In this document: positions 26,878-64,000 of the stretch, one piece after another | Numbering within the stretch: position 1 is the first letter of the stretch | Layout of the letters: each line of letters starts with the position of its first letter | NCBI GenBank assembly: GCA_002269645.1 | Contig: NIVC01001255.1 | Coordinates: 203,643-267,642, forward strand | Direction: 5' to 3' | DNA from: Macrostomum lignano | Taxonomy: Eukaryota | DNA length: 64,000 nucleotides | Position numbers and translations under genes: made by a program | Notes under the pieces: model-generated | The model's database searches: none | What the model was told of the DNA's origin: nothing | Seen by the model: only the letters and a program-made list of their open reading frames with translations

Positions 26878-26927
26878 CTACGAGCGTATCTACTAGTTTA
26901 AAGACGCACTGGCGTTATAGCTGTCCT

Positions 26928-27439: not shown

Positions 27440-27660
27440 ACTTGATCTAATCTGGTGCTTATTAAATCCAATCTGGAGCTTATTAGATCAAATGCGGTGC
27501 TTATTAGATCCAATCTGGCGCTTATTAGATCAAATGCGGTGCTTATTAAATCCAATCTGGCGCTTATGAGATCCAATCTGGCGATTATTAGATCCAATCT
27601 GGCGCTTATTAGATCCAATTTGGCGCTTAGTAGATCCAATCTGGCGCTTATTAGATCCAA
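27440..27660. repeat. 21-bp minisatellite (CCAATCTGGCGCTTATTAGAT), about 10 copies
   Basis: Direct tandem copies that give heptad-periodic ORFs on both strands. Confidence 0.9.
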
Positions 27661-30708: not shown

Positions 30709-30903
30709 TGTGTCAGGAGAGGGTTGAGGTGTCAGGAGAGGGTTGAGGTGTCAGGAGAGGGCTGAGGTGTCAGGAGAGGGTTGAGGTGTCAGGAGAGGGT
30801 TGAGGTGTCAGAGAGGGTTGAGGTGTCAGGAGAGGGTTGAGGTGTCAGGAGAGGGTTGAGGCGTCAGGAGAGGGTTGAGGCGTCAGGAGAGGGTTGAGGT
30901 GTC
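30709..30903. repeat. 19-bp edge array (GTGTCAGGAGAGGGTTGAG), about 10 copies
   Basis: It shares the GTGTCAGGAGAG core with the 17-bp satellite and abuts it. Confidence 0.9.
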
Positions 30904-39900: not shown

Positions 39901-42900
39901 CAGGAGAGTATGGGTGTCAGGAGAGTATGGGTGTCAGGAGAGTATGTGTCAGGAAGATATGGGTGTCAGGAGAGTATGGGTGTCAGGAGAGTATGGTGTC
40001 AGGAGAGTACGGGTGTCAGGAGAGTATGGTGTCAGGAGAGTATGGGTGTCAGGAGAGTACGGGTGTCAGGAGAGTACGGGTGTCAGGAGAGTATGGGTGT
40101 CAGGAGAGTATGGTTGTCAGGAGAGTATGGGTGTCAGGAGAATACGGGTGTCAGGAGAGTATGGTGTCAGGAGAGTATGGGTGTCAGGAGAATATGGGTG
40201 TCAGGAGAGTACGGGTGTCAGGAGAGTATGGTTGTCAGGAGAGTATGGGTGTCAGGAGAGTATGGGTGTCAGGAGAGTATGGGTGTCAGGAGAGTACGGG
40301 TGTCAGGAGAGTATGGTTGTCAGGAGAGTATGGGTGTCAGAGAATATGGGTGTCGGGTGTCAGGAGAGTATGGTTGTCAGGAGAGTATGGTGTCAGGAGA
40401 GTATGGGTGTCAGGAGAGTATGGGTGTCAGGAGAGTATGGGTGTCAGGAGAGTATGGTGTCAGGAGAGTATGGGTGTCAGGAGAATATGGGTGTCAGGAG
40501 AGTACGGGTGTCAGGAGAGTATGGGTGTCAGGAGAATATGGGTGTCAGGAGAGTACGGGTGTCAGGAGAGTATGGTGTCAGGAGAGTACGGGTGTCAGGA
40601 GAGTATGGTAGTCAGGAGAGTATGGTAGTCAGGAGAGTACGGGTGTCAGGAGAATATGGGTGTCAGGAGAGTATGGGTGTCAGGAGAGTACGGGTGTCAG
40701 GAGAGTATGGTTGTCAGGAGAGTATGGGTGTCAGGAGAATATGGGTGTCAGGAGAGTATGGTGTCAGGAGAATATGGGTGTCAGGAGAGTACGGGTGTCA
40801 GGAGAGTATGGTTGTCAGGAGAGTATGGGTGTCAGGAGAATATGGGTGTCAGGAGAGTATGGGTGTCAGGAGAATATGGGTGTCAGGAGAGTACGGGTGT
40901 CAGGAGAGTATGGTTGTCAGGAGAGTACGGGTGTCAGGAGAGTATGGTAGTCAGGAGAGTACGGGTGTCAGGAGAGTATGGTTGTCAGGAGAGTATGGGT
41001 GTCAAGAGAATATGGGTGTCAGGAGAGTATGGTTGTCAGGAGAGTATGGGTGTCAGGAGAATATGGGTGTCAGGAGAGTATGGTTGTCAGGAGAATATGG
41101 GTGTCAGGAGAGTACGGGTGTCAGGAGAGTATGGTTGTCAGGAGAATATGGGTGTCAGGAGAGTACGGGTGTCAGGAGAGTATGGTTGTCAGGAGAGTAC
41201 GGGTGTCAGGAGAGTATGGTTGTCAGGAGAGTATGGGTGTCAGAGAATATGGGTGTCAGGAGAGTACGGGTGTCAGGAGAGTATGGTGTCAGGAGAGTAC
41301 GGGTGTCAGGAGAGTATGGTTGTCAGGAGAGTATGGGTGTCAGGAGAATATGGGTGTCAGGAGAGTACGGGTGTCAGGAGAGTATGGGTGTCAGGAGAGT
41401 ATGGGTGTCAGGAGAGTATGGTGTCAGGAGAGTATGGGTGTCAGGAGAATATGGGTGTCAGGAGAGTATGGGTGTCAGGAGAGTATGGGTGTCAGGAGAG
41501 TATGGGTGTCAGGAGAATATGGGTGTCAGGAGAGTACGGGTGTCAGGAGAGTATGGGTGTCAGGAGAATATGGGTGTCAGGAGAGTACGGGTGTCAGGAG
41601 AGTATGGTTGTCAGGAGAGTATGGGTGTCAGAGAATATGGGTGTCAGGAGAGTACGGGTGTCAGGAGAGTATGGGTGTCAGGAGAGTACGGGTGTCAGGA
41701 GAGTATGGTTGTCAGGAGAGTATGGGTGTCAAGAGAATATGGGTGTCAGGAGAGTACGGGTGTCAGGAGAGTATGGTTGTCAGGAGAGTATGGGTGTCAG
41801 GAGAGTATGGTGTCAGGAGAGTATGGGTGTCAGGAGAATATGGGTGTCAGGAGAGTACGGGTGTCAGGAGAGTATGGTTGTCAGGAGAGTATGGGTGTCA
41901 AGAGAATATGGGTGTCGGGTGTCAGGAGAGTATGGTTGTCAGGAGAGTATGGTGTCAGGAGAGTATGGGTGTCAGGAGAGTATGGGTGTCAGGAGAGTAC
42001 GGGTGTCAGGAGAGTATGGTTGTCAGGAGAGTATGGGTGTCAGGAGAATATGGGTGTCAGGAGAGTACGGGTGTCAGGAGAGTATGGGTGTCAGGAGAGT
42101 ATGGGTGTCAGGAGAGTACGTGTCAGGAGAGTATGGTGTCAGGAGAGTATGGGTGTCAGGAGAGTATGGTGTCAGGAGAGTACGGGTGTCAGGAGAGTAT
42201 GGTGTCAGGAGAGTATGGGTGTCAGGAGAATATGGGTGTCAGGAGAGTACGGGTGTCAGGAGAGTATGGTTGTCAGGAGAGTATGGGTGTCAGGAGAATA
42301 TGGGTGTCAGGAGAGTACGGGTGTCAGGAGAGTATGGTTGTCAGGAGAGTATGGGTGTCAAGAGAATATGGGTGTCAGGAGAGTACGGGTGTCAGGAGAG
42401 TATGGTTGTCAGGAGAGTACGGGTGTCAGGAGAGTATGGTTGTCAGGAGAGTATGGGTGTCAGGAGAATATGGGTGTCAGGAGAGTACGGGTGTCAGGAG
42501 AGTATGGGTGTCAGGAGAGTATGGGTGTCAGGAGAGTATGGTTGTCAGGAGAGTATGGGTGTCAGGAGAATATGGTGTCAGGAGAGTATGGGTGTCAGGA
42601 GAATATGGGTGTCAGGAGAGTACGGGTGTCAGGAGAGTATGGTTGTCAGGAGAGTATGGGTGTCAGGAGAATATGGGTGTCAGGAGAGTACGGGTGTCAG
42701 GAGAGTATGGTTGTCAGGAGAGTATGGGTGTCAGAGAATATGGGTGTCGGAGAGTGTCAGGAGAGTATGGTTGTCAGGAGAGTATGGGTGTCAGGAGAGT
42801 ATGGGTGTCAGGAGAGTATGGGTGTCAGGAGAGTATGGGTGTCAGGAGAGTATGGTGTCAGGAGAGTATGGGTGTCAGGAGAATATGGTGTCAGGAGAGT

Positions 42901-44540
42901 ACGGGTGTCAGGAGAGTATGGGTGTCAGGAGAGTATGGGTGTCAGGAGAGTATGGGTGTCAGGAGAGTATGGTTGTCAGGAGAGTACGGGTGTCAGGAGA
43001 GTATGGTTGTCAGGAGAGTATGGGTGTCAGGAGAATATGGGTGTCAGGAGAGTATGGGTGTCAGGAGAGTACGGGTGTCAGGAGAGTATGGTTGTCAGGA
43101 GAGTATGGGTGTCAGGAGAATATGGGTGTCAGGAGAGTATGGTGTCAGGAGAGTATGGGTGTCAGGAGAGTATGGGTGTCAGGAGAGTATGGGTGTCAGG
43201 AGAATATGGGTGTCAGGAGAGTATGGGTGTCAGGAGAGTATGGTTGTCAGGAGAGTATGGGTGTCAGGAGAGTATGGGTGTCAGGAGAGTATGGGTGTCA
43301 GGAGAGTATGGGTTGTCAGGAGAGTATGGGTGTCAGGAGAGTATGGGTGTCAGGAGAGTATGGTGTCAGGAGAGTATGGGTGTCAGGAGAGTATGGGTGT
43401 CAGGAGAGTATGGTTGTCAGGAGAATATGGGTGTCAGGAGAGTATGGGTGTCAGGAGAGTATGGTTGTCAGGAGAGTATGGGTGTCAGGAGAATATGGGT
43501 GTCAGGAGAGTATGGTTGTCAGGAGAGTACGGGTGTCAGGAGAGTATGGGTGTCAGGAGAGTATGGGTGTCAGGAGAATATGGGTGTCAGGAGAGTATGG
43601 GTGTCAGGAGAGTATGGTTGTCAGGAGAGTATGGGTGTCAGGAGAGTATGGTTGTCAGGAGAGTATGGGTGTCAGGAGAATATGGGTGTCAGGAGAGTAT
43701 GGTTGTCAGGAGAGTATGGGTGTCAGGAGAATATGGGTGTCAGGAGAGTATGGGTGTCAGGAGAATATGGGTGTCAGGAGAGTATGGGTGTCAGGAGAAT
43801 ATGGGTGTCAGGAGAGTACGGGTGTCAGGAGAGTATGGTGTCAGGAGAGTATGGGTGTCAGGAGAATATGGGTGTCAGGAGAGTACGGGTGTCAGGAGAG
43901 TATGGTTGTCAGGAGAGTATGGGTGTCAGGAGAATATGGGTGTCAGGAGAGTATGGTGTCAGGAGAGTATGGGTGTCAGGAGAATATGGGTGTCAGGAGA
44001 GTATGGGTGTCAGGAGAATATGGGTGTCAGGAGAGTATGGGTGTCAGGAGAATATGGGTGTCAGGAGAGTACGGGTGTCAGGAGAGTATGGTTGTCAGGA
44101 GAGTATGGGTGTCAGGAGAATATGGGTGTCAGGAGAGTACGGGTGTCAGGAGAGAACTGAGGTGTCAGGAGAGACTGAGGTGTCAGGAGATATGGGTGTC
44201 AGGAGAGAACTGAGGTGTCAGGAGTATGGGTGTCAGGAGAGAACTGAGGTGTCAGGAAAGTATGGGTGTCAGGAGAGTATGGGTGTCAGGAGAGAGTATG
44301 GGTGTCAGGAGAGTACGTGTGTCAGAAGATAGTACGGGTGTCAGGAGAGTATGGGTGTCAGGAGAGAACTAAGTTGTCAGGAGAGTACGGCTGTCAGGAG
44401 AGTACCGGTGTCAGGAGAGTTCGGGTGTCAGGAGAGTACGGGTGTCAGGAGAGTACGGGTGTCAGGAGAGTACGAGTGTCAGGAGAGTACGGGTGTCAGG
44501 AGAGTATGGTTGTCAGGAGAGTACGGGTGTCAGGAGAGTA
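30899..44540. repeat. 17-bp satellite (GTCAGGAGARTAYGGKT), about 13.6 kb, about 800 units, with higher-order structure
   Basis: Four main variants (GTATGGG, GTATGGT, GTACGGG, ATATGGG) often occur as a 68-bp 4-mer. The 17-aa periodic ORFs in all three + frames are artefacts. Confidence 0.97.
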
Positions 44541-46003: not shown

Positions 46004-49000
46004 TCAGTCAAACCGTTGATCTGGCTTGTCGTGACTTTCCGCCATAAACTCTGCCGCCTGTTTGTCCATGTCCGCCTGGATGACTGCCGGAGGCTGGGCG
46101 CCCTCCTGCCACACGGACACGAGTCGCTGCTTGTCAATCACCAGACGTTGCTCCGGCCGTCTGGGATTAACATAGTACCGAGTTCGCTGTTCGAGACGCA
46201 TTACCAGACTGTCAAAACGGAGAATGGTAATTGCTGCTTGTCAGTCACTTCTGTTCGGTTTTGCGATTATTATTGATAGGCCAAAGATGCGCTCACTAGA
46301 AGAAAAGAAAGAGTGAACTAGAAACCTTTCTAGAGGATTTCAATGGCTCGGAAATTTCAAAGAAATTTTCCCTTCAAATCAGAGCAAAGATCAAAAGAGC
46401 TGGACAGGACATGATTTGAGACCCCGAACCCGAACTAACCCCCGTGGCACGTCAATATAGCATGCACTTGGGAAAGTTATGCGGGAATGTCATGCACACA
46501 GCAATTGAGCCCCAGTTTTGTAGCGAGGCACATACGAAGTACAAAATTTACTAATTTGTATTCTTGATATTTAAAGACTTCTATCAGTTGTCAAATTTAG
46601 TAAATTGACTGATGCCAGCTGGTATCTTGGTCTTCAGTTTAACATCCTGAATCTGAAGGTCCCAACCAATTCTGCCAATTCTTAAATCTATTATTGAGAA
46701 GCAATTCATACTCACTAGATTGTCCAGGACAGGACGATCCTCTCTCATCCTCATCTCCATGGTTGATGATGCAGGCATGTATAAATATAGTTATTTTTCG
46801 GAGAGAATTGCAGACAGAACAGGGAAACGAAAAAGCACAAACAAAGGCTTGCGAAATATGCGGAATACAAATAAGGAACACAGCAAAGCAGCAAAAATGT
46901 TATTGAGGACTGAAAAGCTTCAATCGATTTTCAATTTGGGATTGTCTTTTGAAAAAAATATGAAAAAAATATTTTCAAGAGCGATCCTAGAGTCAGTTAT
47001 TAATATTTTTGCACGGCACAGCAGACAAAAAGCAAAATCCTGTTGTTGCTATCAGCGTCTCTTTTGTGCCATCCTTTTTCTCTACCTCGCCGAACTGTTG
47101 TCGCCATGTTCATCTAAAATGATTGAGCAAGGAATTGCGAATAAGATTGATTGATTGATTAAAGTTAATTAATTAAACAGATACTGGGATCCTGCTGTCA
47201 CCCTGAGCCAGATTAAAACTAAAAGCAATATATAATCTGAGAAATTGCACTCAGCTATACGGAACCAACTAAATCTGGACTGTTTTATTGGAGGTTCGAA
47301 TACAACCATGCTCTATTTTGAGTTAGCTAGCATACCCGAAACTAAGTAATATTCTCATATGACGTCAGTTACTCCATTACCCTGATTAACTGAGCCCCTC
47401 CACTACAGTCGATAAGCCCCATTTCGATATTGAATATGGGATTAAAGGATTGGAAAAATTTAGACTCTTTATAGATAACTTAATGAACTGATAAGGTCAT
47501 GAGGTGCTTCTATCCTAGTCTGCTTTACTCATCTCTTGATCCCTCTATCCTAGTCTGCTTTACTCATCTCTTGATTCCTCTATCCTAGTCTGCTTTACTT
47601 ATCTCTTGATTCCTCTATCCTAGTCTGCTTTACTCATCTCTTGATTCCTCTATCCTAGTCTGCTTTACTCATCTCTTGATTCCTCTATCCTAGTCTGCTT
47701 TACTCATCTCTTGATTCCTCTATCCTAGTCTGCTTTACTTATCTCTTGATTCCTCTATCCTAGTCTGCTTTACTTATCTCTTGATTCCTCTATCCTAGTC
47801 TGCTTTACTCATCTCTTGATTCCTCTATCCTAGTCTGCTTTACTCATCTCTTGATTCCCCTATACTAGTCTGCTTTACTCATCTCTTGATTCCTCTATCC
47901 TAGTCTGCTTTACTCATCTCTTGATCCCTCTATCCTAGTCTGCTTTACTCATCTCTTGATTCCTCTATCCTAGTCTGCTTTACTCATCTCTTGATTCCTC
48001 TATCCTAGTCTGCTTTACTCATCTCTTGATTCCTCTATCCTAGTCTGCTTTAATCATCTCTTGATTCCTCTATCCTAGTCTGCTTTACTCATCTCTTGAT
48101 TCCCCTATCCTAGTCTGCTTTACTTATCTCTTGATCTCTCTATCCTAGTCTACTTTACTCATCTCTTGATTCCCCTATCCTAGTCTGCTTTTCTCATCTC
48201 TTGATTCCCCTATACTAGTCTGCTTTACTCATCTCTTGATTCCTCTATCCTAGTCTGCTTTTCTCATCTCTTGATTCCTCTATCCTAGTCTGCTTTACTC
48301 ATCTCTTGATTCCCCTATCCTAGTCTGCTTTACTTATCTCTTGATCTCTCTATCCTAGTCTGCTTTACTCATCTCTTGATTCCTCTATCCTAGTCTGCTT
48401 TACTCATCTCTTGATTCCTCTATCCTAGTCTGCTTTACTCATCTCTTGATTCCTCTATCCTAGTCTGCTTTACTCATCTCTTGATCTCTCTATCCTAGTC
48501 TGCTTTACTCATCTCTTGATTCCTCTATCCTAGTCTGCTTTACTCATCTCTTGATCTCTCTATCCTAGTCTGCTTTACTCATCTGTTGATTCCTCTATCC
48601 TAGTCTGCTTTACTCATCTCTTGATTCCCCTATACTAGTCTGCTTTACTCATCTCTTGATCTCTCTATCCTAGTCTGCTTTACTCATCTCTTGATTCCTC
48701 TATCCTAGTCTGCTTTACTCATCTCTTGATCTCTCTATCACAGTATAGTACCATCGGCGCCTCCGTGGCCTTCCCGGTCGGGCAACCGCAGGCCCTCCCG
48801 GTCGAAGATATGATCGTGCTCTCTGGGGTCCACTTCCACGGCGTAGTCGTCGTCCATGCTGATGGAGGAAGCCAAGTCAGCCTCGGCTGCAGATTTCCAG
48901 CCGAAGGCCGCGCCGCAGCGTTTTCCCTGGCTCTGCCGCTTCTGCTGCTCTCCAGTTGTCTGCGATGCGTCGGACTGTTCCGAGACTTCAGACGTTGCTG

Positions 49001-49103
49001 ACTCGGATCCATCCGATTGATGGCTTTCCTCCATGTGAAACAGCTGCTGACTCTCATCCGCTGATGCTGCTGCTGCCGCTTCGTCTTCCATTGTTTCGCT
49101 CAT
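46004..49103 (-). CDS. Candidate ankyrin C-terminal exons, or a short internal-start isoform or separate gene
   Basis: A phase-consistent GT-AG chain: 49103-48752 (phase 1), 28-nt microexon 47113-47086 (phase 2), 46208-46004 (stop). It reads MSETMEDEA...GADDEHGDNSSASLVMRLEQRTRYYV...QRFD*. The link to upstream ankyrin exons is not established. Confidence 0.5.
47508..48739. repeat. 35-bp minisatellite (CTCTATCCTAGTCTGCTTTACTCATCTCTTGATTC), about 35 copies, intronic
   Basis: Highly homogeneous tandem copies ending about 12 nt from the donor at 48751. Confidence 0.95.
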
Positions 49104-49238
49104 TTTTATTGTCTTATATGTGCATCTGCCACTCCAACTCAAAGACTTATTGCGGAGGCTAACTACGCTCGTAACTGATTCACGCTGTGTACCCTCTCTG
49201 AGCTAGCTTAAAGCCTACCTGCTCTTAAATTTCGCCAG

Positions 49239-49565: not shown

Positions 49566-52500
49566 CTAATGGTTTGAAAACAAAATAGCATCCGAAAAAA
49601 CCGCACCAGCCTCCGCTGACTCTGCCGTGTGCGCCGTAGTGCCTGCAGTCGAATTCGCAACGTCTAAACTATCTGTGGACGCTTCCATAGCCGACTGTTC
49701 TCGAACAACACGGACGCCCTCGCTGGGCATGGAATAGGCCAGGGCCCAGCCACTGCCGGATGCTTCTTCGTTGCGCAATCCCTCGATGCTGTCAACACTA
49801 GCTACCATCATCTGGGCGGCGTCGGCTGAAGACAGGGAGTCGGCCTCGCTTGGTGCAAGCAGCGAGGATGTCATGCTGGCTCCCATAGCAGCCCCAGGCT
49901 GCTGCTGCTGTGGCGCTGCCAGCACAGACGGCTGACGCACGGAAGACAAGTCGTCATCGTCGTCCTCCTCCTCACTTTCATTTTCTTCCGTCTGCTGTTT
50001 CTCCCCGACCGGTTCTCTTTCGCGTTTCAATTCTTCCTCTGGAGCGGCTTCGTGACCGCTCAAACTGTCCGCATCGATGCGCTCCTCTTGGGACGAGCCA
50101 TGCACCAGAATCTCTTGTATGCGCTGGTAGCTATCGCCTGTCACATCTGCCGCAGCTGCTGATGCGGTCGCAGAATTTGCAGCCTCATCTTCCGGAGACA
50201 TCTCCCCGACTGTGGGCAGCTGACCAGCTTCCAGTGCCTCGGCAATCTTCGATGCTTCACTGAAGAGCTCCTCATCTACGGCCGACTTTTCAAGCTGCTC
50301 AAACTCATCTAACGAGGACGATTTTGAGTCCGCGGCAAGCCGCCCTTCGCTGTCCTTCTCACCTTCTTCCGCTTCCTCCAGAGGACTCTCGTCCAGAGGT
50401 GTCTGGCGCCAAAAATCACCTGGTGAGCCTGTGGTCGTCGCAGCTGCAGCCTCGCACTCGCGTTCGAGCCTTTCAAATTCCACCAGTGACGAGCTGACGG
50501 ATCGGCCCCCGCCGGAGGCAGCCGCTTCACCACTGGACGAAGATTTTTTCAGTGAACCCGTGCTGCTGACCTGCTGAGCGATCTCCTGTTCTAATCGCTC
50601 AAACTCAGAAAGTGACGATGGTATAGAAGATGACGCTGAACGGCTGTCAACTGAGTGCGCCTGCCCGCAGCTGGGGCTCCCACTGACGCCTGTCGCTGCG
50701 CGTGGAACCACCTGCTGCCGCTTGGCGAGCCGCACTGGGTCAGAGGATTGACCTGGCACAGTCGTCAATCCTGCAGTCGCTGGCGAACCTGCGGACGCAG
50801 CACTTGGCGAGGACACCAGCTCGTAGTCCTCCAACGAATCGCGAGATGCCGATAACTCCGACAGCAATTGATCCTGCGCTGTTGTTGCATCCGAGCTGCA
50901 TGACTCAGCCATGAGCTCAGGAAATCTGTCCTGCTGTTGCTGGTGATGCCGCAGCACCACTGTTGACTGGCTTGATAGGCTCGACGCTTCAGATATCTCA
51001 ACAGACATTTCCTCTTCGATCTCGAAACCGATGATTTTCGGAGCAGTTCCAGTCGGACGAGGAATCTGCGAAGTCCGAACTGACTGTTGGACTGTTGACT
51101 TTTGAGAAGCCGCGGTAACTGTCCCCGTTGATGCAGATGGATGATCTCGGTTCTGATCTTGTTGCTGCTCTGGTGAACTCTCTGGAGTCTCTTTCAGCTC
51201 AATGATCGGCGAAAGGACGCTCTCGTCAATAACCACCGGCTCCTGATCCGGCTTCTCTACTTCCGAATCTTCTTCTTCAACTTCTCCTCCTTCGAGCAGA
51301 TCACCTCCGAGCTCCATGAGATGATGTTCAGCGAGCATCTCAGCGGCCAGAGCTCTCTGCTCAAGCTCCGGTGTATCCAGTGGCATCGACTCTACTTCGG
51401 GTTGTACTGCTGATCCCGACAATTCGAGAGCATCGTATGCACTTGCCAGAGCTGACAGCACCAGCTGTGCTGCTACAGACTCTACTTCTGATTCGGCCAC
51501 CGCAGCGCCGTCCTCACCAGTGGGCTCCAGTGTTGTCGGCACAGTTATCTCTTCGAAGGATTCACTGGTGTCATTATCTGTTTTGTTTTCCTCTCGCGCG
51601 GGCAGTGACGGCAGCTGAACTGTCGTAGCTCTCAACGCTCCTATTGCCGGCCCTAGAGCATCTGGGGTATCAAGCGGCTCGGCTGTCTCGTCAACATCGT
51701 CTTCGCCATCACCACCTTCGCCTGGGAATTCAGCCTCGTCGCACTCGGAGTTTTGAACGGTGTCCGGCCCGGCTAGGGTGGAGGCAGCCTCACTTGCCAG
51801 CGACATCGAGATGTCTGTGGCGTCTTCGTCTCTTCCCGCTGGCTGCCGTGACTGCTCCGTATCGCTGTCACACGTATCGGCGCCCGCCTCCGCAGCGCTA
51901 ACCAGAATGAAGCCGCTATCGTCTTGGCAGGCAGCGCTACCGAAGTATTCCGTGGTAGCGGAGGTCCCCATTCCCGCGCCTTCACCGCTGCCGGCGGCAC
52001 CGCCTCCCCCGGTTACGCTGATTCCCGAGCTAGGCATTTCGCTAGACCTGGATGCATCCTGGCTGAACGAGGACGTATTGAGAGGTAATTCGCTCGCCGC
52101 CGCTGACTCCATCATTTCGGCTGCCTCAGCCTCCATTTCAAACTGATCCTCTTCCTCCTTGATTGGAGAGCGGTCGTCAGGACTAAGACTAGCCTTGTCA
52201 TTCCCCTTGTCCTCTTCTGCGATCTTTGATGTTTTTTCGTCCTCCTTGTCAGCTTCCAATGACTGCGAAGTAGTAGCAGAAGCGGTTGCCATCTGCACTT
52301 TCGCATCTGGTGGGAGGGAGCGGCGGATGACTGAGTCAAATGACTCTGGCGTTGGCGACGGAGGCGCAGAACCAGGAGATGCAGGCGATGCGGCGATGTT
52401 TGCTGCTGCAGCCGCAACAGCTGGGAGTTGCGGCGACGCTTGTGGCTGCATCGACTGCTGCGTCTCTGTCGGTGCAGCCTCCTCAGACTTAGCCAGTGGG

Positions 52501-55500
52501 AATGCCTCGATGCCATGGTAGACTCTAGTTTGCGGCTGAGAAACAAGCATAGACTCCTCCGATGCAGGCAGCTGGTCCTTGTTCCAAACAATCCAATCGT
52601 CTGTCTCTTCGTCTTTTCCAGCAATGTCGTCTCTCGTAGCATCGTCTGGTTTTGGAACAGTGCTGGGCGCTTTTAGCTCCTCTGGTCTAACTCCAGAGCT
52701 TACACTGCCAGCACCTACAGTTTCATTTTCCTTGCTAGGCAGGGTTTTCGGTAATGTATCTGCTTCCTTGTACACCAAGCTTTTCTCCTCTTCTAGAACT
52801 TCTTCAAGCGCAGCCTCGGGTAGCTCAGCAGACTCCCCAAAAAAGTCCATATCCTTCGCACTGGCGTCAGGGCCCAGTGATTTACCCGATTGCTCTTCAA
52901 ACGTTGGCATTTCAAACCTCTCAGGCTCCAAAGGCTGTTCGACTTCTTGAGGCTTGCAGGTCGGTTTCTCAGCTTCTTCAGGCTCCTTGTGAGTCGGTTT
53001 TTTCACCTCTTCAGGGTCCTTGTAGGCCGGCTTCTCTGCCTCTTCAGGCGCCATGTGAGTCGGTTTTTCCACCTCTTCAGGGTCCTTGTAGGCCGGCTTC
53101 TCTGCCTCTTCAGGCGCCATGTGAGTCGGTTTTTCCACCTCTTCAGGGTCCTTGTAGGCCGGCTTCTCTGCCTCTTTAGGCTCCATTTGAGTGGACTTCT
53201 TGACCTCCTCAGGTTCATTATAGGTCGGCTTCTCTGCCTCTTCAGGCTCCATTTGAGTGGACTTCTTGACCTCCTCAGGTTCATTATAGGTCGGCTTCTC
53301 TGCCTCTTCAGGCTCCTTTTGAGTTGGCTCCTCGACCACCTCGAGTTCTTCATAGGCTGGCTTTTCAATTTTTTCAAGTTCATTGTAAGTTAACTCATCG
53401 ACCTCTTCAGGCTCTTCGTAGGTCAGCTTTTCGATTGCTTCAGTCTCCTTCAGAGTTGGCTTTTCCTCCTCAGATTCATTTTTAGTCGGTTTCTCGACCT
53501 TCTCAGACTTTTCATGCTGATGTTCGACTACTGACTCAAAACTCTCTTTTTGAATAGAAACCGCTTCCTGATTGGTCAGCCAGTGCTTACTCTGAAGCGC
53601 GCGCATTTCCTGAGCTTCCTCCACTCGACTATTAGATTCGCTGCTATCCCACGAACGAAAAGATACGCTGTGAACTGAACCAGCTACTTGTCGAAAGCTA
53701 CTTTCCTGGTGAATTTCAGTTTTATTCAACGTGCTCGCACTCTGAACTGTGCTTTCCTCAAAATGAAGGGACTGTGAATGAGTCTCCGAAAAATATTGTT
53801 GCTGCTCTGAAACTCCAGCTGTTCTCGAAGTCACCTCGGTCAGCAATGAGGTCGAAGTGTCTCCGATAGCTGAGTCCTCAGGCACCCGGAGCTGCACAGC
53901 TAGGATTTCAAATTCATCCAAAACTTCTGACTTAGATTTCAAAGCAGTCTCGAAATTCGAATTGATTTCTGAATGAGCTTTCTCGGTTGAATAACCAGCC
54001 GTGTCATGAATTGGCTCATCAAGAGGATTCTCTTCAGTGTGAACAAGCTCATCCAGAAACTTAGAAACTTCTTCTTCGGCACGAATTGATTCTTCTTGAC
54101 TGTCAGGAACCTTCTCTTCAGTGTTGAGTGCCTTATCGTGAATTGTCTCTTCAGCATGAGCTGGCTCATCGTGCACTTCTGTAACCTTATCAGTGTGTGC
54201 CGGCTCTACATGCACTTTAGGAACCTTCTCTTCGGCATGAACAGGCTCTTCATGCACTTCAGGAATCTTCTCTTCGGCGTGAGCAGGCTCTTCATGCACT
54301 TCAGGAACCTTCTCTTCGGCATGAGCTGGCTCTTCCTGCACTTCAGGAACCTTCTCTTCGGCATGAGCTGGCTCTTCATGCGAAACTTCAGTAACCTTCT
54401 CTTCGGCGTGAGCTGGCTCTTCCTGCACTTCAGGAATCTTTTCTTCGGCATGAGCTGGCTCTTCATGCAACACTTCAGGAACCTTCTCTTCGGCGTGAGC
54501 TGGCTCTTCTTGCAACACTTCAGGAACCTTCTCTTTGGCGTGAGCTGGCTCTTCGTGCAACACTTCAGGAACCTTCTCTTCGGCGTGAGCTGGCTCTTCA
54601 TGCGAAACTTCAGTAACCTCTTCGGCGTGAGCTGGCTCTTCGTGCGAAACTTCAGTAACCTCTTCAGCGTGAGCTGGCTCTTCGTGCAACACTTCAGGAA
54701 CCTTCTCTTCGGCGTTAGCTGACTCTTCCTGCACTTCAGGAACCTTCTCTTCGGCGTTAGCTGGCTCTTCCTGCACTTCAGGAACCTTCTCTTCGGCATG
54801 AGCTGGCTCTTCATGCAAAACTTCAGTAACCTTCTCTTCGGCGTGAGCTGGCTCTTCGTGCGAAACTTCAGTAACCTTCTCTTCGGCGTTAGCTGGCTCT
54901 TCCTGCACTTCAGGGACCTTCTCTTCGGCATGAGCTGGCTCTTCCTGCACTTCAGGAACCTTTTCTTCGGCATGAGCTGGCTCTTCCTTCACTTCAGGAG
55001 TTTTCTCTTCGGCGTGAGCTGACTCTTCATGTGAAACTTCAGTAACCTTCTCTTCGGTGTGAGCTGGCTCTTTATGCAACACTTCAGTAACCTTCTCTTC
55101 GGCATGAGCTGGCTCTTCATGCACTTCAGGAACCGTCTCTTCGGCGTGAGCTGGCTCTTCATGCAACACTTCAGGAACCTTCTCTTCGGCGTAAGCTGGC
55201 TCTTCATGCACTTCAGGAGTTTTCTCTTCGGCGTGAGCTGCCTCTTCGTGCGAAACTTCAGTAACCTTCTCTTCGGCGTAAGCTGGCTCTTCATGCGAAA
55301 CTTCAGTAACCTTCTCTTCGGTGTGAGCTGGCTCTTTATGCAACACTTCAGTAACCTTCTCTTCGGCATGAGCTGGCTCTTCATGCACTTCAGGAACCGT
55401 CTCTTCGGTGTGAGCTGGCTCTTCATGCAACACTTCAGGAACCTTCTCTTCGGCGTAAGCTGCCTCTTCGTGCGAAACTTCAGGAACCTTCTCTTCGGCG

Positions 55501-58500
55501 TGAGCTGGCTCTTCGTGCAACACTTCAGGAAACTTCTCTTTGGCGTGAGCTGGCTCTTCATGCACTTCAGGAACATTCTCTTCGGTGTGAGCTGGCTCTT
55601 TATGCACTTCAGGAGTTTTCTCTTCGGCGTGAGCTGCCTCTTCGTGCGAAACTTCAGTAACCTTCTCTTCGGCGTAAGCTGGCTCTTCATGCGAAACTTC
55701 AGTAACCTTCTCTTCGGCATGAGCTGGCTCTTCATGCACTTCAGGAACCGTCTCTTCGGCGTGAGCTGGCTCTTCATGCAACACTTCAGGAACCTTCTCT
55801 TCGGCGTAAGCTGGCTCTTCATGCACTTCAGGAGTTTTCTCTTCGGTGTGAGCTGCCTCTTCGTGCAAAACTTCAGTAACCTTCTCTTCGGCGTGAGCTG
55901 GCTCTTCGTGCGAAACTTCAGTAACCTTCTCTTCGGCGTGAGCTGGCTCTTCATGCGAAACTTCAGGAACCTTCTCTTCGGCGTGAGCTGGCTCTTCGTG
56001 CAACACTTCAGGAAACTTCTCTTTGGCGTGAGCTGGCTCTTCGTGCAACACTTCAGGAAACTTCTTTTTGGCGTGAGCTGGCTCTTCATGCACTTCAGGA
56101 GTTTTCTCTTCGGCATGAGCTGGCTCTTCATGCAAAACTTCAGTAACCTTCTCTTCGGCGTGAGCTGGCTCTTCGTGCGAAACTTCAGTAACCTCTTCGG
56201 CGTGAGCTGGCTCTTCATGCACTTCAGGAACCTTCTCTTCGGTGTGAGCTGGCTCTTTATGCACTTCAGGAGTTTTCTCTTCGGCGTGAGCTGCCTCTTC
56301 GTGCGAAACTTCAGTAACCTTCTCTTCGGTGTGAGCTGGCTCTTTATGCAACACTTCAGTAACCTTCTCTTCGGCATGAGCTGGCTCTTCATGCACTTCA
56401 GGAACCGTCTCTTCGGCGTGAGCTGCCTCTTCATGCAACACTTCAGGAACCTTCTCTTCGGCGTGAGCTGACTCTTCGTGCGAAACTTCAGTAACCTTCT
56501 CTTCGGCGTGAGCTGGCTCTTCATGCACTTCAGGAGTTTTCTCTTCGGCATGAGCAGGCTCTTCATGCGAAACTTCAGGAACCTTCTCTTCGGCGTTAGC
56601 TGGCTCTTCCTGCACTTCAGGAACCGTCTCTTCGGCGTGAGCTGGCTCTTCATGCAACACTTCAGTAACCTTCTCTTCGGCGTGAGCTGGCTCTTCATGC
56701 ACTTCAGGAGTTTTCTCTTCGGCATGAGCTGGCTCTTCATGCAAAACTTCAGTAACCTTCTCTTCGGCATGAGCAGGCTCTTTATGCAAAACTTCAGTAA
56801 CCTTCTCTTCGGCATGAGCAAGTTCTTCATGCAAAACTTCAGTAACCTTCTCTTCGGCGTGAGCTGGCTCTTCATGCAACACTTCAGTAACCTTCTCTTC
56901 GGCGTTAGCTGGCTCTTCCTGCACTTCAGGAACCGTCTCTTCGGCGTGAGCTGGCTCTTCATGCAACACTTCAGGAACCTTCTCTTCGGCGTGAGCTGCC
57001 TCTTCGTGCGAAACTTCAGGAGTTTTCTCTTCGGCGTGAGCTGGCTCTTCATGCACTTCAGTAACCTTCTCTTCGGCGTAAGCTGGCTCTTCATGCGAAA
57101 CTTCAGTAACCTTCTCTTCGGTGTGAGCTGGCTCTTCATGCACTTCAGGAGTTTTCTCTTCGGCTTGAGCAGGCTCTTCATGCAAAACTTCAGTAACCTC
57201 TTCGGCATGAGCAGGCTCTTCATGCAAAACTTCAGGAACCTTCTCTTCGGCATGAGCTGGCTCTTTCTGCACTTCAGGAATCTTCTCTCCGACATGAGCT
57301 GCCTCTTCCTGTACTTCAGGAACCTTCTCTTCTGCATAAGCAGGCTTTTCGAGCACCTCAGAAACCTTCTCTTCGGCATGAGGTGGCTCTTTATGCACTT
57401 TAGGAGTTTTCTCTTCGGCGTGAGCTGGCTCTTCATGCGAAACTTCAGTAACCTTCTCTTCGGCGTGAGCTGGCTCTTCCTGCACTTCAGGAACCTTCTC
57501 TTCTGCATAAGCAGGCTTTTCGAGCACTTTTAAAACCTCTATAGCATGAGGTCGCTTTTTGTGCACTTCAGGAGTTTTCTCTTCGGCGTGAGCTGCCTCT
57601 TCTTGCGAAACTTCAGGAACCTTCTCTTCGGCGTGAGCTGGCTCTTCATGCACTTCAGGAGCTTTCTCTTCGGCGTGAGCTGGCTCTTCATGCACTTCAG
57701 GAACCTTCTTTTCGGCGTGAGCTGGCTCTTCGTGCAACACTTCAGGAACCTTCTCTTCGGTGTGAGCTGGCTCTTCATGCACTTCAAGAGTTTTCTCTTC
57801 GGCATGAGCAGGCTCTTCATGCACTTCAGGAACCTTCTCTTTGGCGTGAGCTGGCTCTTCATGCAACACTTCAGAAACCTTCTCTTCGGCGTGACCTGGC
57901 TCTTCGTGCACGCCAGGAACCATTTTAGGAAGATCTGGCTCTACGTGCATTTCTAGAGTCTTCTCTTTAGCTGACTCCTCGTGAAGTTCAGGAGCCTTGT
58001 CAGCTTGTAGTGCTTCGTCCTGAAGCTTCTTATTATTTTCTTCTGCATAATCTGGATGAGTTTGGCTAAGCTCTGTGCTTCTCTTTCTTAGCTGAACTGC
58101 AAGAACATTTATTTCCTCTTCCCTTTCGATGTGACGGTGCATTGGCTCAGATACAGAATCACTTTGGACCGTCGCTTTCTCGTGTTGAATCCTCTCATCA
58201 AGAACCGTCTTCTGATCCAGCCGATCTTGTTCAGTCGGAACAGTCGGTTCGGATGGTTTTTCCTTTTCATGAGTAGTCTGCTCATCTTGAGCAGGAGTCT
58301 GCACCTCCTTCGTCTTAGCCTTCAGCTCTATCGACTCCTCCTCGGTGATTTGCGTCATGCGCTCAGCCAGAGGCGATGCTGCCACTGCACCTGCAGCAGC
58401 GCTGTTGCCCCCAGCTCCCGGAAACTTCTTGTAGGCGTCAACGGGACTCTGCACCGGGCTGTCCAGCTTCTCCTCGATGCGAGAGTACGCGTACTCAGCG

Positions 58501-59149
58501 GAGACTAGTCGGGAAAATGCCGCGGCGCCAGCTTGTTGGGCACTCGTCAAATCCTCTTTAGCCGGGCTGACCAGCTCTTCTGGTCGAATTCCGCCCTCAT
58601 GGAACAGGCCGCGCCCGATCGGCAGCTCCTCGGGCCTGAAGAAGGCGGGCTTTCCAGCAGATGGCGTTTCCTCATCGTCTTCCTCCTCGCCCTCCGTGGC
58701 CGAAGCCGACGTGTAGGATGCCGATGAGGCGCTTTCCAAAAAGACGTCCTCCGAAGCGTCTGCTACCTCTGCATCGGCTGCCTGTTGGAAACTGATGACT
58801 GCGGACGGCGTCTCCTCTACTGGCGTCGGCGCCTCGGAGCCGGTATCAGCGCCAGACATGGAGCGCGTTAGCTCGGAGATCGATTTCTCCTCCACCTGGG
58901 GCGTCGCATCAGGCGCGTTTAGCGCGTCATCGATGCTGACATGCCGCATCTCGCTGCGAAGGCTCTCTTCGAACTCTATGCTGCGCAGCATAAGCGAGTT
59001 CAACGAATGCCGCCGCGTAGCATCGCCTGGTGATTCTGCAGGCGCCGGCGCGACGTCGGCTGCCCTGTCGGAAGCTTCCTCGATCGCGGACGCTACTGGA
59101 AGTTGCGTCGGTGGTTGAGCCTGTCGTCTCTGGGCGTCTCGTTGTGTCT
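49566..59149 (-). CDS. Giant exon of a giant ankyrin (9584 nt, about 3190 aa, acidic and disordered)
   Basis: An uninterrupted ORF with the acceptor TCTACAG|AG at 59149 in phase 1, matching the upstream exon donor. It lies downstream of the ZU5-ZU5-UPA exons on the same strand and is E/A/P/S-rich. Confidence 0.85.
52960..53420 (-). repeat. Coding repeat, 11/22-aa units (EEAEKPAYKDPEEVEKPTHMAP)
   Basis: 66-bp periodicity inside the giant exon. Confidence 0.85.
54180..57900 (-). repeat. Coding repeat, about 85 copies of 14/15-aa HEEPAHAEEKVPEV(L/S)
   Basis: 42/45-bp units whose length variants preserve the reading frame. Confidence 0.92.
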
Positions 59150-59385
59150 CTGTAGATTTCGACGGCGGAGAGTAGGGCAGGGTCGGGTTTAGTGGGAAGC
59201 GGAGGGATTCGTGTGTTAAGAGCGGCACAGCAAAAACTTGTTCGTATTAGCATGCAAGTTTCAACCCATAAAAACTATACTATAAGTAGCGCCCACCCCT
59301 CTCCATTCTGTGCATGCAGATCAGGCAAGAGGTTCGGCAACTGGAGAACACACGGCAAGACCAGAGCTGCAAGCTTTGCGGGTAC

Positions 59386-61324
59386 CGCTGTCAGTTGCCC
59401 TCGGCCTGGAGAGCTCATCTGGAGTAGAGGAAGACGTTACAGTCGCCGTGCCCGATGCCGACGCCGATGCCGCCTCCATGAGGGCCTCCCGCCAGGCCTC
59501 ATCGGATGAAGACGGATCGTCGGCACCCAACAGGGTGTCCTCGCTGGCCCCGGTTGTGATGTCGGTGAAGTCGGCTGAAACAGCCGACGAGGCCGTGGTG
59601 GATCGGTCAGCGGAGCTATCCGTCCGCTCGCGTCGTCGGCGGAGTCGCGGACGTTGCGAGTCCGGCGTGGCCCAGGTGCCGGAGTCCTCGCGGGCCTCCG
59701 AGGCAGCGGACCTCTGGGACCGACTGTCTGCTTGAGCAGCAGTGATTTGCTAGCAAGCTTCAGTCTCAGCCTAAGTGTGTAACTAGCGACTTACCGTACT
59801 GAACCATTAGAAAATTAATCTTGCCAAAATAGGACTTATCAGTTAATGCACAAATAAGATATCTGGAATGCATACTCAATTAGCTAAGATGCATGGAGCT
59901 TCTGAATGGTTCAAGATTATTTGGTAGGTAATAAATGTACTAAAAATGGATAGATAATTTTCCTGACCAAGACCTTCCAAAGTACGGACTGCTCAAGGAT
60001 CATCAAGGATGGAAGCGAACGCAGATTTTGCATGACGCCGCTGTCCCCAACCACGCTGATCAAGTTTGATTTTCTATACAAAAAAAGTTAGTAGGGTCTG
60101 CGAGTCCTTACTGTCTTCCGCATCTGCAGCATCATCTGGCTCTTCTGCGGCAGCTGGAATAAAATCGATAAAAATCAGTGAAAATATGTTTCTCACGGAT
60201 GTGTCAATGCACAATATCGAAGCAGAAAGTGGAAATTTCTCACCTTCATCAGCAACGCTGGAGGATCTGCGCTGTTCTGCGTGTGCAATCCCAACAATTT
60301 TCGGTACCTCGACAACTGGAATGGAACACAGCATTCGATTTACGAGGCATGCTTTCGATGTTCTCTATATTCTCTCTTTGTTTAACTGAACTAGGGACTA
60401 ATGAACCGATCGCGCGTTCTTTCACCTTCCTCCGGTGTTCCCGCCTCCGGGGCCATGGACTGGTCCTGATGAACGTCCAACTTGTGTAGAGTCTTTTCAA
60501 CTGAAATGTTTCAATATTCCATTGACAAGTAAATACGATTGTACTAATGGTAAAAAACCATGACTAACAGGGAATAAAGTACATTAGCGTTCAGTCAACC
60601 GTTTTAAGGGATATTAAATTTTCTTCAGAAACAGCCACCCGTAATTTATTTCTACTTATTCAAGCGTAAAATTCAATTTAATTTCATTTATCAAGTCCAT
60701 TTGAAGCGTGACTAATGATGCATTGCAAAAAATGATGAAGCTATACTGGCTTGTTGAAAATTACCATCAGCTGTGGCCTTTGGCAGTGCTTGCGCCTGCG
60801 TAACCGTCTTTGGCACCTCGACCACTGCAAATTTTTATTTGACAGTTTGCGCTTAGTTAGAAAAAATTGGTTGGATCGTAATCTTTCGACTATAAATACT
60901 AGTTTTGTTGTATTAATATCAATTACCTTCTTCCGGTGTTACAGCTTCCGGCGCCATGGACTGGTCCTGAATTGCATCCCGCTTCTCCAATTTCTCTTCA
61001 ATAGGAACTGAAAAATTATATCGTTATTAACAGTATAATACTACTAACCCAATATAAGTAGTCTAACATGTAAAATTGCTAAAAAAATTCACGAACCCCC
61101 AGCAGCTGTCTCTGGAGGCGTGTGCACCTGGGCTTGCACTTGGCTGATAGACTTTGGTACATCAACAACTTCTTCTGGCGTTCCAGCCTCCGGCGCCATC
61201 GACTGATCGGGACGAGCGTCCAGCCTGGCCAGCAGCTCCTCCACCGCGTTGAGTCCCTCCTTTGCTCGCTTCTCCGGCGAGCCGGGTGCTTTGCTCGGCT
61301 CCACTACAGCCTCATCTACAGACT
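59386..61324 (-). CDS. Six symmetric (phase 1-1) ankyrin exons between UPA and the giant exon
   Basis: Exons are 61324(or 61315)-61097, 61007-60927, 60500-60426, 60315-60244, 60153-60112 and 59727-59386. Lengths are 228, 81, 75, 72, 42 and 342 nt; all are AG/GT-bounded and stop-free in frame. Confidence 0.75.
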
Positions 61325-61580
61325 CTGGAGTTGAGGTGTTGGGGATGATGCGTCAAGTCCGCTAGTTATCACTGGGAACATTTTTGATTGTCATATACAG
61401 CCATCCTAGTTGACGTAATCTCTATAAAGCAAAACGGTACAGCAATCCGACGTCGATGACAGATATGTACTCTTACACTATCTGTCAATGCAATGTAGAA
61501 GCACATATTTTTCATCGTCCCCAGGTTACTGCACGAGAAACTAAAAACGATTCGCATCTACCATCCCCCAAAGCACTAAC

Positions 61581-64000
61581 CTTTGTCTTCAAACTCTGAG
61601 GTCGTAGCCAACGGCTTCGGCTCAGGTGTCTGTTCCTCCAACGTGCGAACCAACTCCAGATAGGCCTCTGTCTTGGCGCGCCGTGCGGCTGCCTCCTCGT
61701 CGGCGGTGTACGATCGAGCTACGCCGTGCGTCGGATCCACGGCCGCAACCAGTTCGGGCTCATCTGCGGACTCCGCTGGCGCAGCAACATCCGATGCTGC
61801 CCGCGGCGCCGGCCTTGCAGCCTTTGAAATCGGAGGTCCGCTGTAGTCCGGCAGGGCCAATTCCAGAGTGCAGATTGCCGCAGTCGTCGCGGAGGTCGTC
61901 TGCGGCTCGGCCAGGAAGGCGACGCGTCCAGCGGCCGGCTGGTCGGCGTCGCGGGGTCGAGCGCCGCAGGTGAGGCGGTTTTCTCGGAAAGCACGGACGG
62001 TGAAGAACGGCGGCTGCTGTAGCTGGTGCTGCTGCTGGTGATCGAACAGACCGCGAGGCTCGGCCGCCACATGGAAGGCGGTCAGATTGTCTAAACCTTC
62101 TATCCACAACGGCCGACCGTCGAGGATTTCAACTTCGCGCGATTCCGCCTTCCGCTCGAAGCCCTGCGCCGTCTCCAGAGTTTTGTCCGCCTGTTGATTG
62201 TTGCGAGTCGCGGCCGTGCATCGATTTTGGTTTGCACTTGAAAGCTAAGCACATTTGGCTAGGTTAGATACTAGATAGAAAGGATATCCTTCAACGATTA
62301 CATGTAGAATTATGTCAGGGCCGCTGTACACCCCTTGGCTCCGTAGCTAAATCTCCTTCACAAATTCTTTTTCAAGAAAACGAAACTACTAATTTTCACC
62401 TTAGTATCAATTGCTAAATCATGTTTGAATCCCTTAGGTTTTATCCCTTCTAATAATCTCTCCCTTACCCGGTCATCCGTGATGCAGAGGCAGCGAAGTC
62501 GAGCCTCATCCGGGTGAGTCCTCTTGGCGTAGACCACAAAGCGGCCCATGTAGGGCACGGCAGCGGCCTCCCTGTACAGCTTGCCGGCCATCTCGGCGGC
62601 TTCGGCCGGGTTCTGACAGTCGACTAGCCAAAATCTGGCGCTCACCGTTGTAGTGAAAGACACGCTGTCCTTGACGTGGGACAGCGCTGTAGAACCGGTG
62701 ATGTCTTCCCAGGTGGCCGGCTGAGCGCCACCAGTGATGCTGCATAGCAGGCGAAGCGTCTGCGACGCGCCCAACCCTGACGCCGACGCGGCCGACGGCA
62801 GCGGCAGGGTGAGAGTGATCGGCTTGTGAAATTTACGCCGACGCGGCTCGATGGTCACCACCGGGAGGCGGCGATTCGACGCTGGCCAGCGCCGCCGAAC
62901 AGGCGGGCAGCCGCCTCCGACGGGATCGGGAATACCTGTAAACGGTTTTGAATATCCGTTGTACTTTTAGGGACTCTTCTTTGTACTATTAAGGACTCTC
63001 TGTTGTACTTTTAAGGACTCTGTTGTACTTTAAGGGACTCTCTGTTGTACTTTTAAGGACTTTCTTTTGTACTTTAGAGACTCCCTGTTGTACTATTAGG
63101 GACTCTCTATTGTACTTTTAATGACCTCACTCTTGTACTTTTAGGGACTCTCTGTTGTACTTTTAGTGACTCTCTAAAGCACACACGACAAGCCAGAAGC
63201 ACTCATTTAAAGACTAAGTATAGGTCAAGTCAGTGCAAGCGCACTCTGGAAAAGGATTAAAAACGCAAGTTGACAGACTCCATGGTCCAAAAAAGCTTGA
63301 CAGAAAAGTGGCACCAATTCAGACGCCAGTTCAAACCTGAACTCCAACTCGAATCTTCTTGGTCAAGGCGCCGTCCGGGAACACAGACTGGACGCGTCCG
63401 TTGGCCAGGCTGGCGCCAATAACGCCGCCCTCCGGACCGATCAGGGCCGCCTCCTGTCGGAGCCGCGTCACCAAGGCGAAGTACTGCGGGGCTGGCAGTC
63501 AGGATGCGTACGATGCGCCTCTGGCGCAGCTCTTCGTTGCTCTCCAACGGGCTGCCAAAGAAGCCGCCAATGACGTCTAGCACAGCCTGCTCGGAGGCCT
63601 CAAGAGCGTGCTCTTTCCAGGTTTCACCTGTGTCCGATCTGACAGGTACGGGATGTGATGTCTGCACTGTTATGTCTATGGCCTAACTTTGACAGAGCGA
63701 GAGCGAGCACAGTACCGCAAAGCAGCCGACTATTTAAAATTCATCTTTCTTACTTGAATTTCGTTGGAGATTCGCTCTCACCTGTAGACCACAATCTCCC
63801 TCTCAGAGTTCCTCAGCGCGGCCATGTGCGGCACCTCGAGCAGCACGGGACTGGCGAAGCTCCGGCAGCTGCAGCCGAACTCCAGGATCCGGCAGCGCGA
63901 GGCCTCGCCGTCGTTTCAGCTGCGGCGGCCGGCTCACCCGGCCGGGGCGGAGCAGGCGGCACGTGACTCGGTTGGCCGGTGGCCGCGTTCGGCGGCACCA
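61581..64000 (-). CDS. ank: Ankyrin spectrin-binding region exons (ZU5-A, ZU5-B, UPA), with frameshifts in this sequence
   Basis: Exons are >64000-63782, 63638-63337, 62935-62469 and 62190-61581. Motifs include [125 protein letters not shown] and AFRENRL. Confidence 0.93.
62955..63175. repeat. About 23-bp diverged minisatellite (GGGACTCTCTGTTGTACTTTTA) in an ankyrin intron
   Basis: About 10 copies anchored on GTACT. Confidence 0.8.

Follow-up and report, generated by a model that had tools for sequence, protein, structure and literature searches.

A giant ankyrin exon carrying a private tandem repeat array in the flatworm Macrostomum lignano

Does the flatworm Macrostomum lignano possess a giant ankyrin, and is the large tandem repeat lying within its candidate long exon translated as part of the protein? 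The question is raised by a stretch of 64,000 nucleotides of contig NIVC01001255.1 (assembly GCA_002269645.1, forward-strand positions 203,643 to 267,642), referred to here as the window, whose minus strand holds an open reading frame (ORF) of 3220 codons at 49566..59228, the sole very long ORF in that part of the window. Of the 36 bilaterian ankyrins surveyed by Jegla et al. (2016), 23 had long exons, and these were present in every bilaterian phylum sampled, with a mean length of 8103 +/- 4850 bp, the groups surveyed being tunicates, cephalochordates, echinoderms, molluscs, annelids, arthropods and nematodes (PMC5135030); neither the text nor Table S4 of that survey includes a flatworm. Here, we present evidence that the region is an M. 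lignano giant ankyrin exon, spliced to linker exons that follow ZU5-ZU5-UPA and encoding an acidic, disordered chain with an array of ~87 repeat units. We assign this reading a probability of roughly 0.85.

The identity of the gene is apparent from the exons that precede the ORF. A homologue search with the whole ORF returned one protein, the M. lignano 'ZU5 domain-containing protein' P0001 (UniRef A0A1I8I218; 98% identity), and the N-terminal 462 residues of this gene model map by tblastn to window exons at 61.6-64.0 kb. The ZU5-ZU5-UPA region matches the human ankyrin-2 structure 6m3q with E=2.7e-137 over residues 1-459, the window copy needing frame corrections, and the structures of human ankyrin-2, -3 and -1 with E=1e-137 to 1e-114. 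Pfam UPA_2 is recognised in two exon segments (62361-62966, E=1.7e-12; 61579-62244, E=3.8e-19), and the nearest database relatives of ZU5-UPA are ankyrin-2 of Fasciola gigantica (54% identity), followed by the ankyrins of other animals. A second M. lignano model, P0011 (UniRef A0A1I8GVL9, 'ANK_REP_REGION domain-containing'), was recovered by an exhaustive phmmer search. It consists of ANK repeats, ZU5-ZU5-UPA, the linker, ~350 residues from the start of the giant exon and four HEEPAHAEEKV array units, after which it stops, evidently at a contig end. The window itself ends inside the first ZU5 domain; the exons for the ANK repeats lie beyond position 64000, and the ANK repeats are known from P0011. 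Because of the structure matches of ZU5-ZU5-UPA, the UPA_2 segments, the ankyrin relatives and the ANK repeats of P0011, the gene is, as judged by similarity, an ankyrin.

The two gene models agree at 328 of 330 compared positions, and the window copy differs from them by ~2-3%, so that the window represents another copy or allele. By tblastn, P0011 is ~81-100% identical to the window in the ZU5-UPA and linker exons and ~85% identical over the start of the giant exon. M. lignano is described in PMC5704211 and PMC10733133 as a hidden tetraploid, or recent polyploid, with redundant gene copies. A search for contigs encoding P0001, P0011 or the ORF found no record.

The splice sites connecting the ORF to these upstream exons are well defined. 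The first base of the giant exon, 59149, directly follows a pyrimidine-rich tract and CAG, and the last base of the preceding exon, 59386, is followed by GT. Splicing 59386 to 59149 reproduces the join of ...ATDS to ETQRD... in P0001. In P0011 the acceptor at 59149 is again used, but from a different upstream exon; after 60242-60316 it has a short second exon, ending ...GAAGACA before GT near 60100, that is joined to this acceptor. The first-pass annotation, a model's reading of the sequence, had proposed a single 9.6-kb exon following ZU5-ZU5-UPA and a junction from 59386 to 59149. The GT donor and the pyrimidine/AG acceptor are present exactly there, in agreement with the P0001 join, and the single long exon is borne out by the ORF, the acceptor and the domain matches upstream. 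The order of domain and exon also stands, but immediate adjacency does not, since ~292 linker codons (P0001 residues 520-811) lie between them. Three copies of a ...DQSMAPEAGTPEE / VV[DE]VPK... motif are encoded in the small linker exons at 60412-61325, and these near-repeats across exons point to exon duplication. On the basis of splice-site geometry and two automated gene models, we infer that the giant exon is contiguous with the UPA-side exons in the mRNA.

The predicted product of the giant exon is ~3,190 residues long, highly acidic, and rich in Pro, Ser and Ala. Ser and Glu account for 30.4% of the whole exon and for 28% of the part outside the array; the six residues S/E/T/D/K/P together account for 53.9% and 51.8%, respectively. 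Long ankyrin exons as a class have an S+E content of ~25% and an S/E/T/D/K/P content of >55% (PMC5135030). With 9,584 nt, 30% S+E and 54% for the six residues, the present exon fits this class. A Pfam scan of the whole 3220-aa ORF yielded no family at E<=0.01, PPAK included, and no polyadenylation signal was found within 465 nt after the TAG stop.

The most prominent element of the exon is its main tandem array. TRF places it at 54146-57921, with a period of 45/87 nt, 87 copies and 84% matches, and the encoded protein can be parsed into 15-aa units (44), 14-aa units (37) and 13-aa units (two), flanked by degenerate copies; the ~85 copies counted in the first-pass annotation are thus in agreement with both. 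Over its 1268 aa, the array contains 32% E, 13% A, 12% V, 11% H and 10% P. Its net charge is -309 (~-0.24 per residue, or ~-4 per unit), and with 145 His in total it is, as had been proposed, both acidic and His-rich. Each unit holds two His and two Pro, so that a Pro recurs every 7-8 residues, and a 15-residue unit combines two His with five Glu. Comparison of the array with itself reveals blocks of several units duplicated 615, 657, 876 and 528 nt apart, distances that are all divisible by three, and internal 300-nt blocks are up to 96.7% identical at the 615-nt lag. It is by such repeated multi-unit duplications that the array grew.

The unit is private to M. lignano as far as sequence comparison reaches, and was found in no other ankyrin and in no other protein outside the species. 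When 1.84 billion representative proteins were searched exhaustively with phmmer, no match fell below 1e-30; the sole true relative was P0011, and none of the other 106 matches had ZU5/UPA similarity. Moreover, the unit, HEEPAHAEEKVPEV, is unlike every repeat consensus in Table S4 of Jegla et al. (PMC5135030). It is the phmmer search on which we rely for this negative, because candidate selection in the homologue search tool was evidently swamped by low-complexity words: queried with the whole ORF, the tool missed P0011; queried with the non-repeat 1,521 aa, it returned nothing, not even P0001, which shares ~520 aligned residues; and queried with ZU5-UPA, it returned short proteins only and neither M. 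lignano model. Its negatives carry no weight. The failure of the first-pass annotation to recognise the unit from other ankyrins is therefore upheld by both the phmmer search and the Table S4 comparison.

A private unit is, however, the expected state of a giant ankyrin and not an anomaly, because the documented long-exon arrays are lineage-specific. Only some of the long exons contain repeat arrays; these comprise from 5 to >160 copies of units of 36-228 bp (12-76 aa) and are homologous only between very close species (PMC5135030). The proposal that this is a giant ankyrin whose coding repeat is lineage-specific gains support from the ZU5-ZU5-UPA region, the splice junction and the lack of any relative of the unit outside M. 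lignano. Its novelty had been overestimated, given that lineage-specific arrays are already known to recur in ankyrin long exons (PMC5135030) and that a near-identical UniProt model, P0011, already contains the start of this one.

Several known giant ankyrins resemble the M. lignano gene in part. In Drosophila melanogaster Ank2-XL, a 27.8-kb long exon with 93 repeats of 76 aa gives rise to the giant isoform by exon inclusion, as it would here, and its large array is likewise built from an acidic Pro/Lys/Glu/Ser-rich unit in a similar number of copies (93 versus ~87). The two arrays nonetheless share no sequence similarity, and the unit of 76 aa in the fly contrasts with one of 14-15 aa in M. 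lignano; furthermore, the Ank2-XL exon lies downstream of a death domain, none of which is found in the M. lignano window, and the function of Ank2-XL has been tested in the fly. For the Ank2-XL array, a role as a molecular spacer that organises axonal microtubules and sets axon diameter has been postulated (PMC5135030). Caenorhabditis elegans UNC-44 has a 15-kb exon with 44 repeats of 27 aa and seven of 60 aa, and thus, like the present exon, two repeat families in one ORF, but its units are Thr-rich (VIETTTTTT...) and unrelated, and its exon too is downstream of the death domain. The long UNC-44 isoform is described as neuronal and as anchoring microtubules to the cortex (PMC7159925). An array of 20 units of 27 aa is listed for Limulus (Table S4, PMC5135030).

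The giant exons of vertebrate ankyrin-B (440 kDa) and ankyrin-G (480 kDa) follow ZU5-ZU5-UPA with no death domain in between, a layout also seen in the present gene, and have the same composition bias, and vertebrate AnkB contains an array of short units (15-16 copies of 12 aa, PPVSPSGKTEKH). In contrast to M. lignano, the vertebrate exons are then followed by a death domain; they have far fewer repeats, with none in AnkG, and no sequence similarity to the present exon. The long-exon array of Branchiostoma floridae, with >160 copies of 16 aa, provides another high-copy unit of ~15 aa in a gene in which the death domain was not identified. It differs from that of M. lignano in its unit, GRPLSSDEXATILQAA, in the presence of two long exons, and in belonging to a deuterostome.

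Observations that weigh against this reading concern, in turn, the array, the ZU5 exons, the death domain and the structure prediction. Openness inside the array alone proves little, because stretches of up to 846 codons are open in the two alternative reading frames as well, and chance ORFs reaching 2,321 codons arise in a non-coding satellite with a 17-bp unit that lies 10 kb away in the window. Selection within the array leaves only a weak signal: the comparison of synonymous with other variant types (12/28 versus 27/107, p=0.10) is a trend that does not reach significance. In addition, P0001 removes residues ~356-2270, both arrays included, as an in-frame GT..AG intron from ~58163 to 52418, joining ...KATVQ to TVAAAAAN... 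by a canonical GT (CAAA before GTGATT, ~58163) and AG (CCCAG before CT, ~52418). Some or all mRNAs could accordingly lack the array, and one explanation of the long frames and the skipping model together is that splicing normally removes the array, or the entire central 5.7 kb of the ORF, as an in-frame intron or 'exitron', the 14-aa repeat being a frame-neutral intronic satellite. We regard this as quite unlikely. The skipped interval holds ~1.9 kb of non-repetitive sequence that is open and in frame, and the ~5.9 kb of non-repetitive sequence flanking the array on both sides is open in the array's own frame. Indels and duplication lags are without exception multiples of three, the unit lengths of 13, 14 and 15 aa differing by whole codons. 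None of the seven possible types of one-step stop mutation occurs in 81 units; stop variants appear only in the other frames, and the ORF frame is the only array frame that lacks them. The synonymous share of variant occurrences is 37% in the ORF frame versus 23% and 21% in the others, a comparison that is supportive but weak. P0011, an independent annotation, reads the array as predicted coding sequence in that it annotates the first units as such. Finally, P0001 is an automated prediction. Since gene predictors commonly skip repeats, its array-skipping intron is more likely to be the predictor's way around the repeat than real alternative splicing. A comparable case is Ciona, in which a 13.4-kb ORF lay in a gap of a predicted ankyrin gene and cDNA PCR verified a 13,344-bp long exon (PMC5135030). 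P0001 departs from the giant ORF at two further places: ~75 codons are skipped via an in-frame GT..AG from 50817 to 50604, and an exit at ~50484 would replace the last ~310 ORF codons. The P0001 introns within the giant ORF may represent alternative splicing or prediction artefacts.

The ZU5 exons of the window, in comparison with P0001 and P0011, contain at least seven indels of 1-2 nt that disrupt the frame, one adjacent pair of which restores it. Together with the redundant gene copies attributed to this hidden tetraploid or neopolyploid species (PMC5704211, PMC10733133), they might indicate that the window copy is a decaying duplicate, a pseudogene in a recently polyploid genome whose giant ORF is merely not yet broken. 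The distribution of the indels makes this unlikely: neutral decay does not predict seven in 1.8 kb of ZU5/UPA exons and none in 9.6 kb, and the giant exon shows no frameshift against P0001 and only ~2-3% substitutions. Because the indels fall within short stretches of C, G or A and are accompanied by hardly any substitutions (at 62869-62856, one C is missing from a C-run), and because the 9.6-kb exon has none, they look like long-read consensus errors, a signature different from that of mutation. Such errors in the same contig, the near-identity of 300-nt blocks within the array noted above, and the end of the P0011 contig after four units, suggesting that an earlier assembly broke inside the array, raise the separate concern that copy number and unit order are in part an assembly artefact, by collapse or expansion, and that 87 copies is not the true allele. 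This is possible, if somewhat doubtful, in that the array is only 3.8 kb long, well within single long reads, and is perfectly in frame; an artefact of this kind would alter the number of units and not the nature of the feature. We retain a giant ankyrin exon as the most probable reading of the locus, in which the array would be included in the mature mRNA.

The canonical ankyrin architecture is incomplete here in that a death domain was not found. Pfam Death is absent from the ORF, from selected exon segments and from the stop-free segments of 44.6-47.5 kb and 59.2-61.6 kb. Over the whole window, tblastn with flatworm and mollusc ankyrin death domains gave nothing significant, and a hidden Markov model (HMM) built from these domains scored <=4.6 bits, including the region from UPA to the giant exon. 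In the monogenean ankyrin P0224 the death domain comes right after UPA, and in all protostomes tabulated in Table S4 the long exon is downstream of the death domain (PMC5135030). In M. lignano the death domain is lost, located beyond the window or too diverged, and the long exon's position is to be classed as 'undetermined', as it is in Branchiostoma.

In addition to the main array, the giant exon contains a second repeat and several short motifs. The second repeat corresponds to the 22-aa repeat of the first-pass annotation and is seen as pairs of an 11-aa unit, in which, from the translation, EKP[TA]Y[NK][ED]PEE[VA] alternates with [EK]K[PS]T[HQ]M[AE]PEEA. The LAVQLR motif that had been noted on both sides of the array is indeed present at aa 376 and aa 1776, each time after E-x-x-[IV]. 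With three repeated 6-mers observed in the non-repeat part versus 0.5 expected from shuffles, the LAVQLR pair is modestly beyond chance. Five of the six codons differ between the two copies, at synonymous sites, and the pair is therefore not a recent DNA duplication but, as the codon differences suggest, an old or convergent protein-level repeat. In one tblastn alignment, INVLAVQLRKRS... fell on the death-domain helix W-x-x-LA-x-x-LG of a mollusc ankyrin, with E=15 only. The idea that the LAVQLR motifs remain from a death domain that the array interrupts was rejected, the HMM scoring ~0 bits on the flanks and on an array-deleted fusion of them.

A further motif, SSL-x-EFE[RQ]LE, occurs three times near the C-terminus of the giant exon, where shuffles predict 0.025 occurrences, and a related LDEFEIL is found at aa 1772 (53915). 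The core of SSL-x-EFE[RQ]LE is an acidic-F-x-x-L followed by Glu and a hydrophobic residue. 'LIR core + C-helix' motifs that bind Atg8/GABARAP are described for vertebrate giant ankyrins and FAM134B (PMC8727931). The M. lignano motif appears to resemble these, with the acidic residue at +6 and not +7, and is to be taken as a lead only. The EB1-binding motif SxIP is not enriched in the giant exon (4 observed versus 2.4 expected). The coordinates of all these features are collected in Table 1.

Table 1. Features of the M. lignano ankyrin locus, in window coordinates
Feature	Position	Strand	Details and evidence
First ZU5 exons	63334..63998 (63781-63998, 63334-63649)	-	tblastn of P0001 and P0011
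ZU5 indels	~63980-63965 (two), 63922-63908, 63909-63891 (compensating pair), 63496-63481, 62869-62856	-	Relative to gene models
Second ZU5 and UPA start exon	62409..62962	-	tblastn; Pfam UPA_2 E=1.7e-12
UPA exon	61582..62223	-	Pfam UPA_2 E=3.8e-19; tblastn 96% identity
Small linker exons	60412..61325 (61098-61325; two within 60766-61011; 60412-60501)	-	tblastn of P0001 and P0011
Alternative linker exon of P0011	60242..60316	-	tblastn of P0011
Linker exon of P0001	59386..59728	-	Last base 59386, then GT
Giant ankyrin exon	49566..59149	-	9,584 nt; acceptor 59149 to TAG stop 49566-49568; ORF and splice acceptor; 97-98% identity to P0001 and P0011 where shared
First E-x-x-[IV]-LAVQLR motif (EEINVLAVQLR)	58086..58115	-	Upstream of array; LAVQLR at aa 376 (58103-58086)
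Main tandem array	54129..57932	-	aa 433-1700; ~87 units of 13-15 aa, consensus LHEEPAHAEEKVPEV, both edges degenerate
Second motif (EFEILAVQLR)	53886..53915	-	Downstream of array; LAVQLR at aa 1776 (53903-53886)
Second repeat	52953..53461	-	TRF period 33/66 nt; 11-aa unit in 22-aa pairs, ~8 pairs
SSL-x-EFE[RQ]LE, three copies	50289..50606	-	aa 2875, 2917, 2975
Downstream exon of P0001	48753..49112	-	Reached from internal donor after SVSSSL (~50484) in giant ORF
Last exon of P0001	46007..46210	-	...KPDQRFD then stop; tblastn

Every segment of the giant exon falls on the disordered side of the charge-hydropathy boundary. AlphaFold2 predicted neither helices nor strands in 200 aa of the array, with a mean pLDDT of 46.6, although the low confidence of this run on a single sequence is weak evidence for disorder. 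The Pro at every 7-8 residues and the net charge of ~-4 per unit should make the array an extended polyanionic chain, incapable of long helices. Judging from other giant ankyrins, the insert would most likely project, long and flexible, from the spectrin-ankyrin skeleton at the neuronal membrane; in this projection, the non-repeat parts of the giant exon would carry short binding motifs and the length of the array would set the reach or spacing of the projection. The microtubule or axon-calibre ruler suggested in the first-pass annotation, with repeat number as a tunable allele, may likewise be regarded as a reasonable analogy. A more specific proposal is that the array serves as an independently evolved, length-tunable spacer which, by virtue of its many His and Glu, could contract or lengthen in response to pH or Zn2+, with its unit number under selection for axon geometry, in combination with a long exon after UPA without a death domain. 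We consider this a long shot.

Entropic springs and spacers of similar character are found outside the ankyrins, in the PEVK/PPAK repeats of titin and in neurofilament side-arms, and offer a functional analogy. The array shares with titin PEVK a short Pro-Glu-Val-Lys-rich unit (here EEKVPEV), high charge and predicted disorder; it differs in being strongly net-negative and His-rich and in its protein context, and PPAK is not matched at E<=0.01. PEVK/PPAK identity for the ORF was rejected for want of a Pfam match at this threshold.

The remainder of the window is rich in other repeats. A 17-bp satellite, GTGTCAGGAGAGTATGG, occupies 13.8 kb just downstream of the ankyrin gene (30710-44540; ~814 copies, 90% matches, GC skew ~+0.7), and its long chance ORFs, which are on the plus strand, caution against reading long ORFs in repeats as genes. 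A 35-bp tandem repeat (47509-48739; 35 copies, 95% matches) adjoins the exon at 48753-49112 on its downstream side, in the next intron of P0001. Two very long microsatellites consist of 468 copies of ATCT (13453-15324) and 200 copies of TAGCAG (17395-18587). Rhodopsin-family G-protein-coupled receptor reading frames at 4632-6224 (+) and 18701-19150 (+) match Pfam 7tm_1 with E=1e-32 and 9e-18, and represent neighbouring genes downstream of the ankyrin locus, on the opposite strand. Minus-strand ORFs of 140-200 codons within 23810-28656 (for example 26386-26877, 26931-27359 and 28093-28656) have no Pfam match.

The giant isoform described here is absent from current protein sets, because, of the two public models, one ends within the array and the other removes it by splicing. 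If the spacer proposal is true, unit number would differ between the M. lignano subgenome copies, between strains and between sister species. The idea would be testable in M. lignano by shortening the array, given the transgenesis and genome resources reported for this species (PMC5730564, PMC10733133, PMC10468722). The lack of a death domain between UPA and the long exon sets this gene apart from all other tabulated protostome ankyrins. If true, a protostome gene with its long exon directly after UPA would have the chordate-type position, which would bear on the scenario of a single origin and a single switch for giant ankyrins. With this locus, the documented range of giant-ankyrin long exons and of the private, fast-evolving arrays they carry comes to include the Platyhelminthes.

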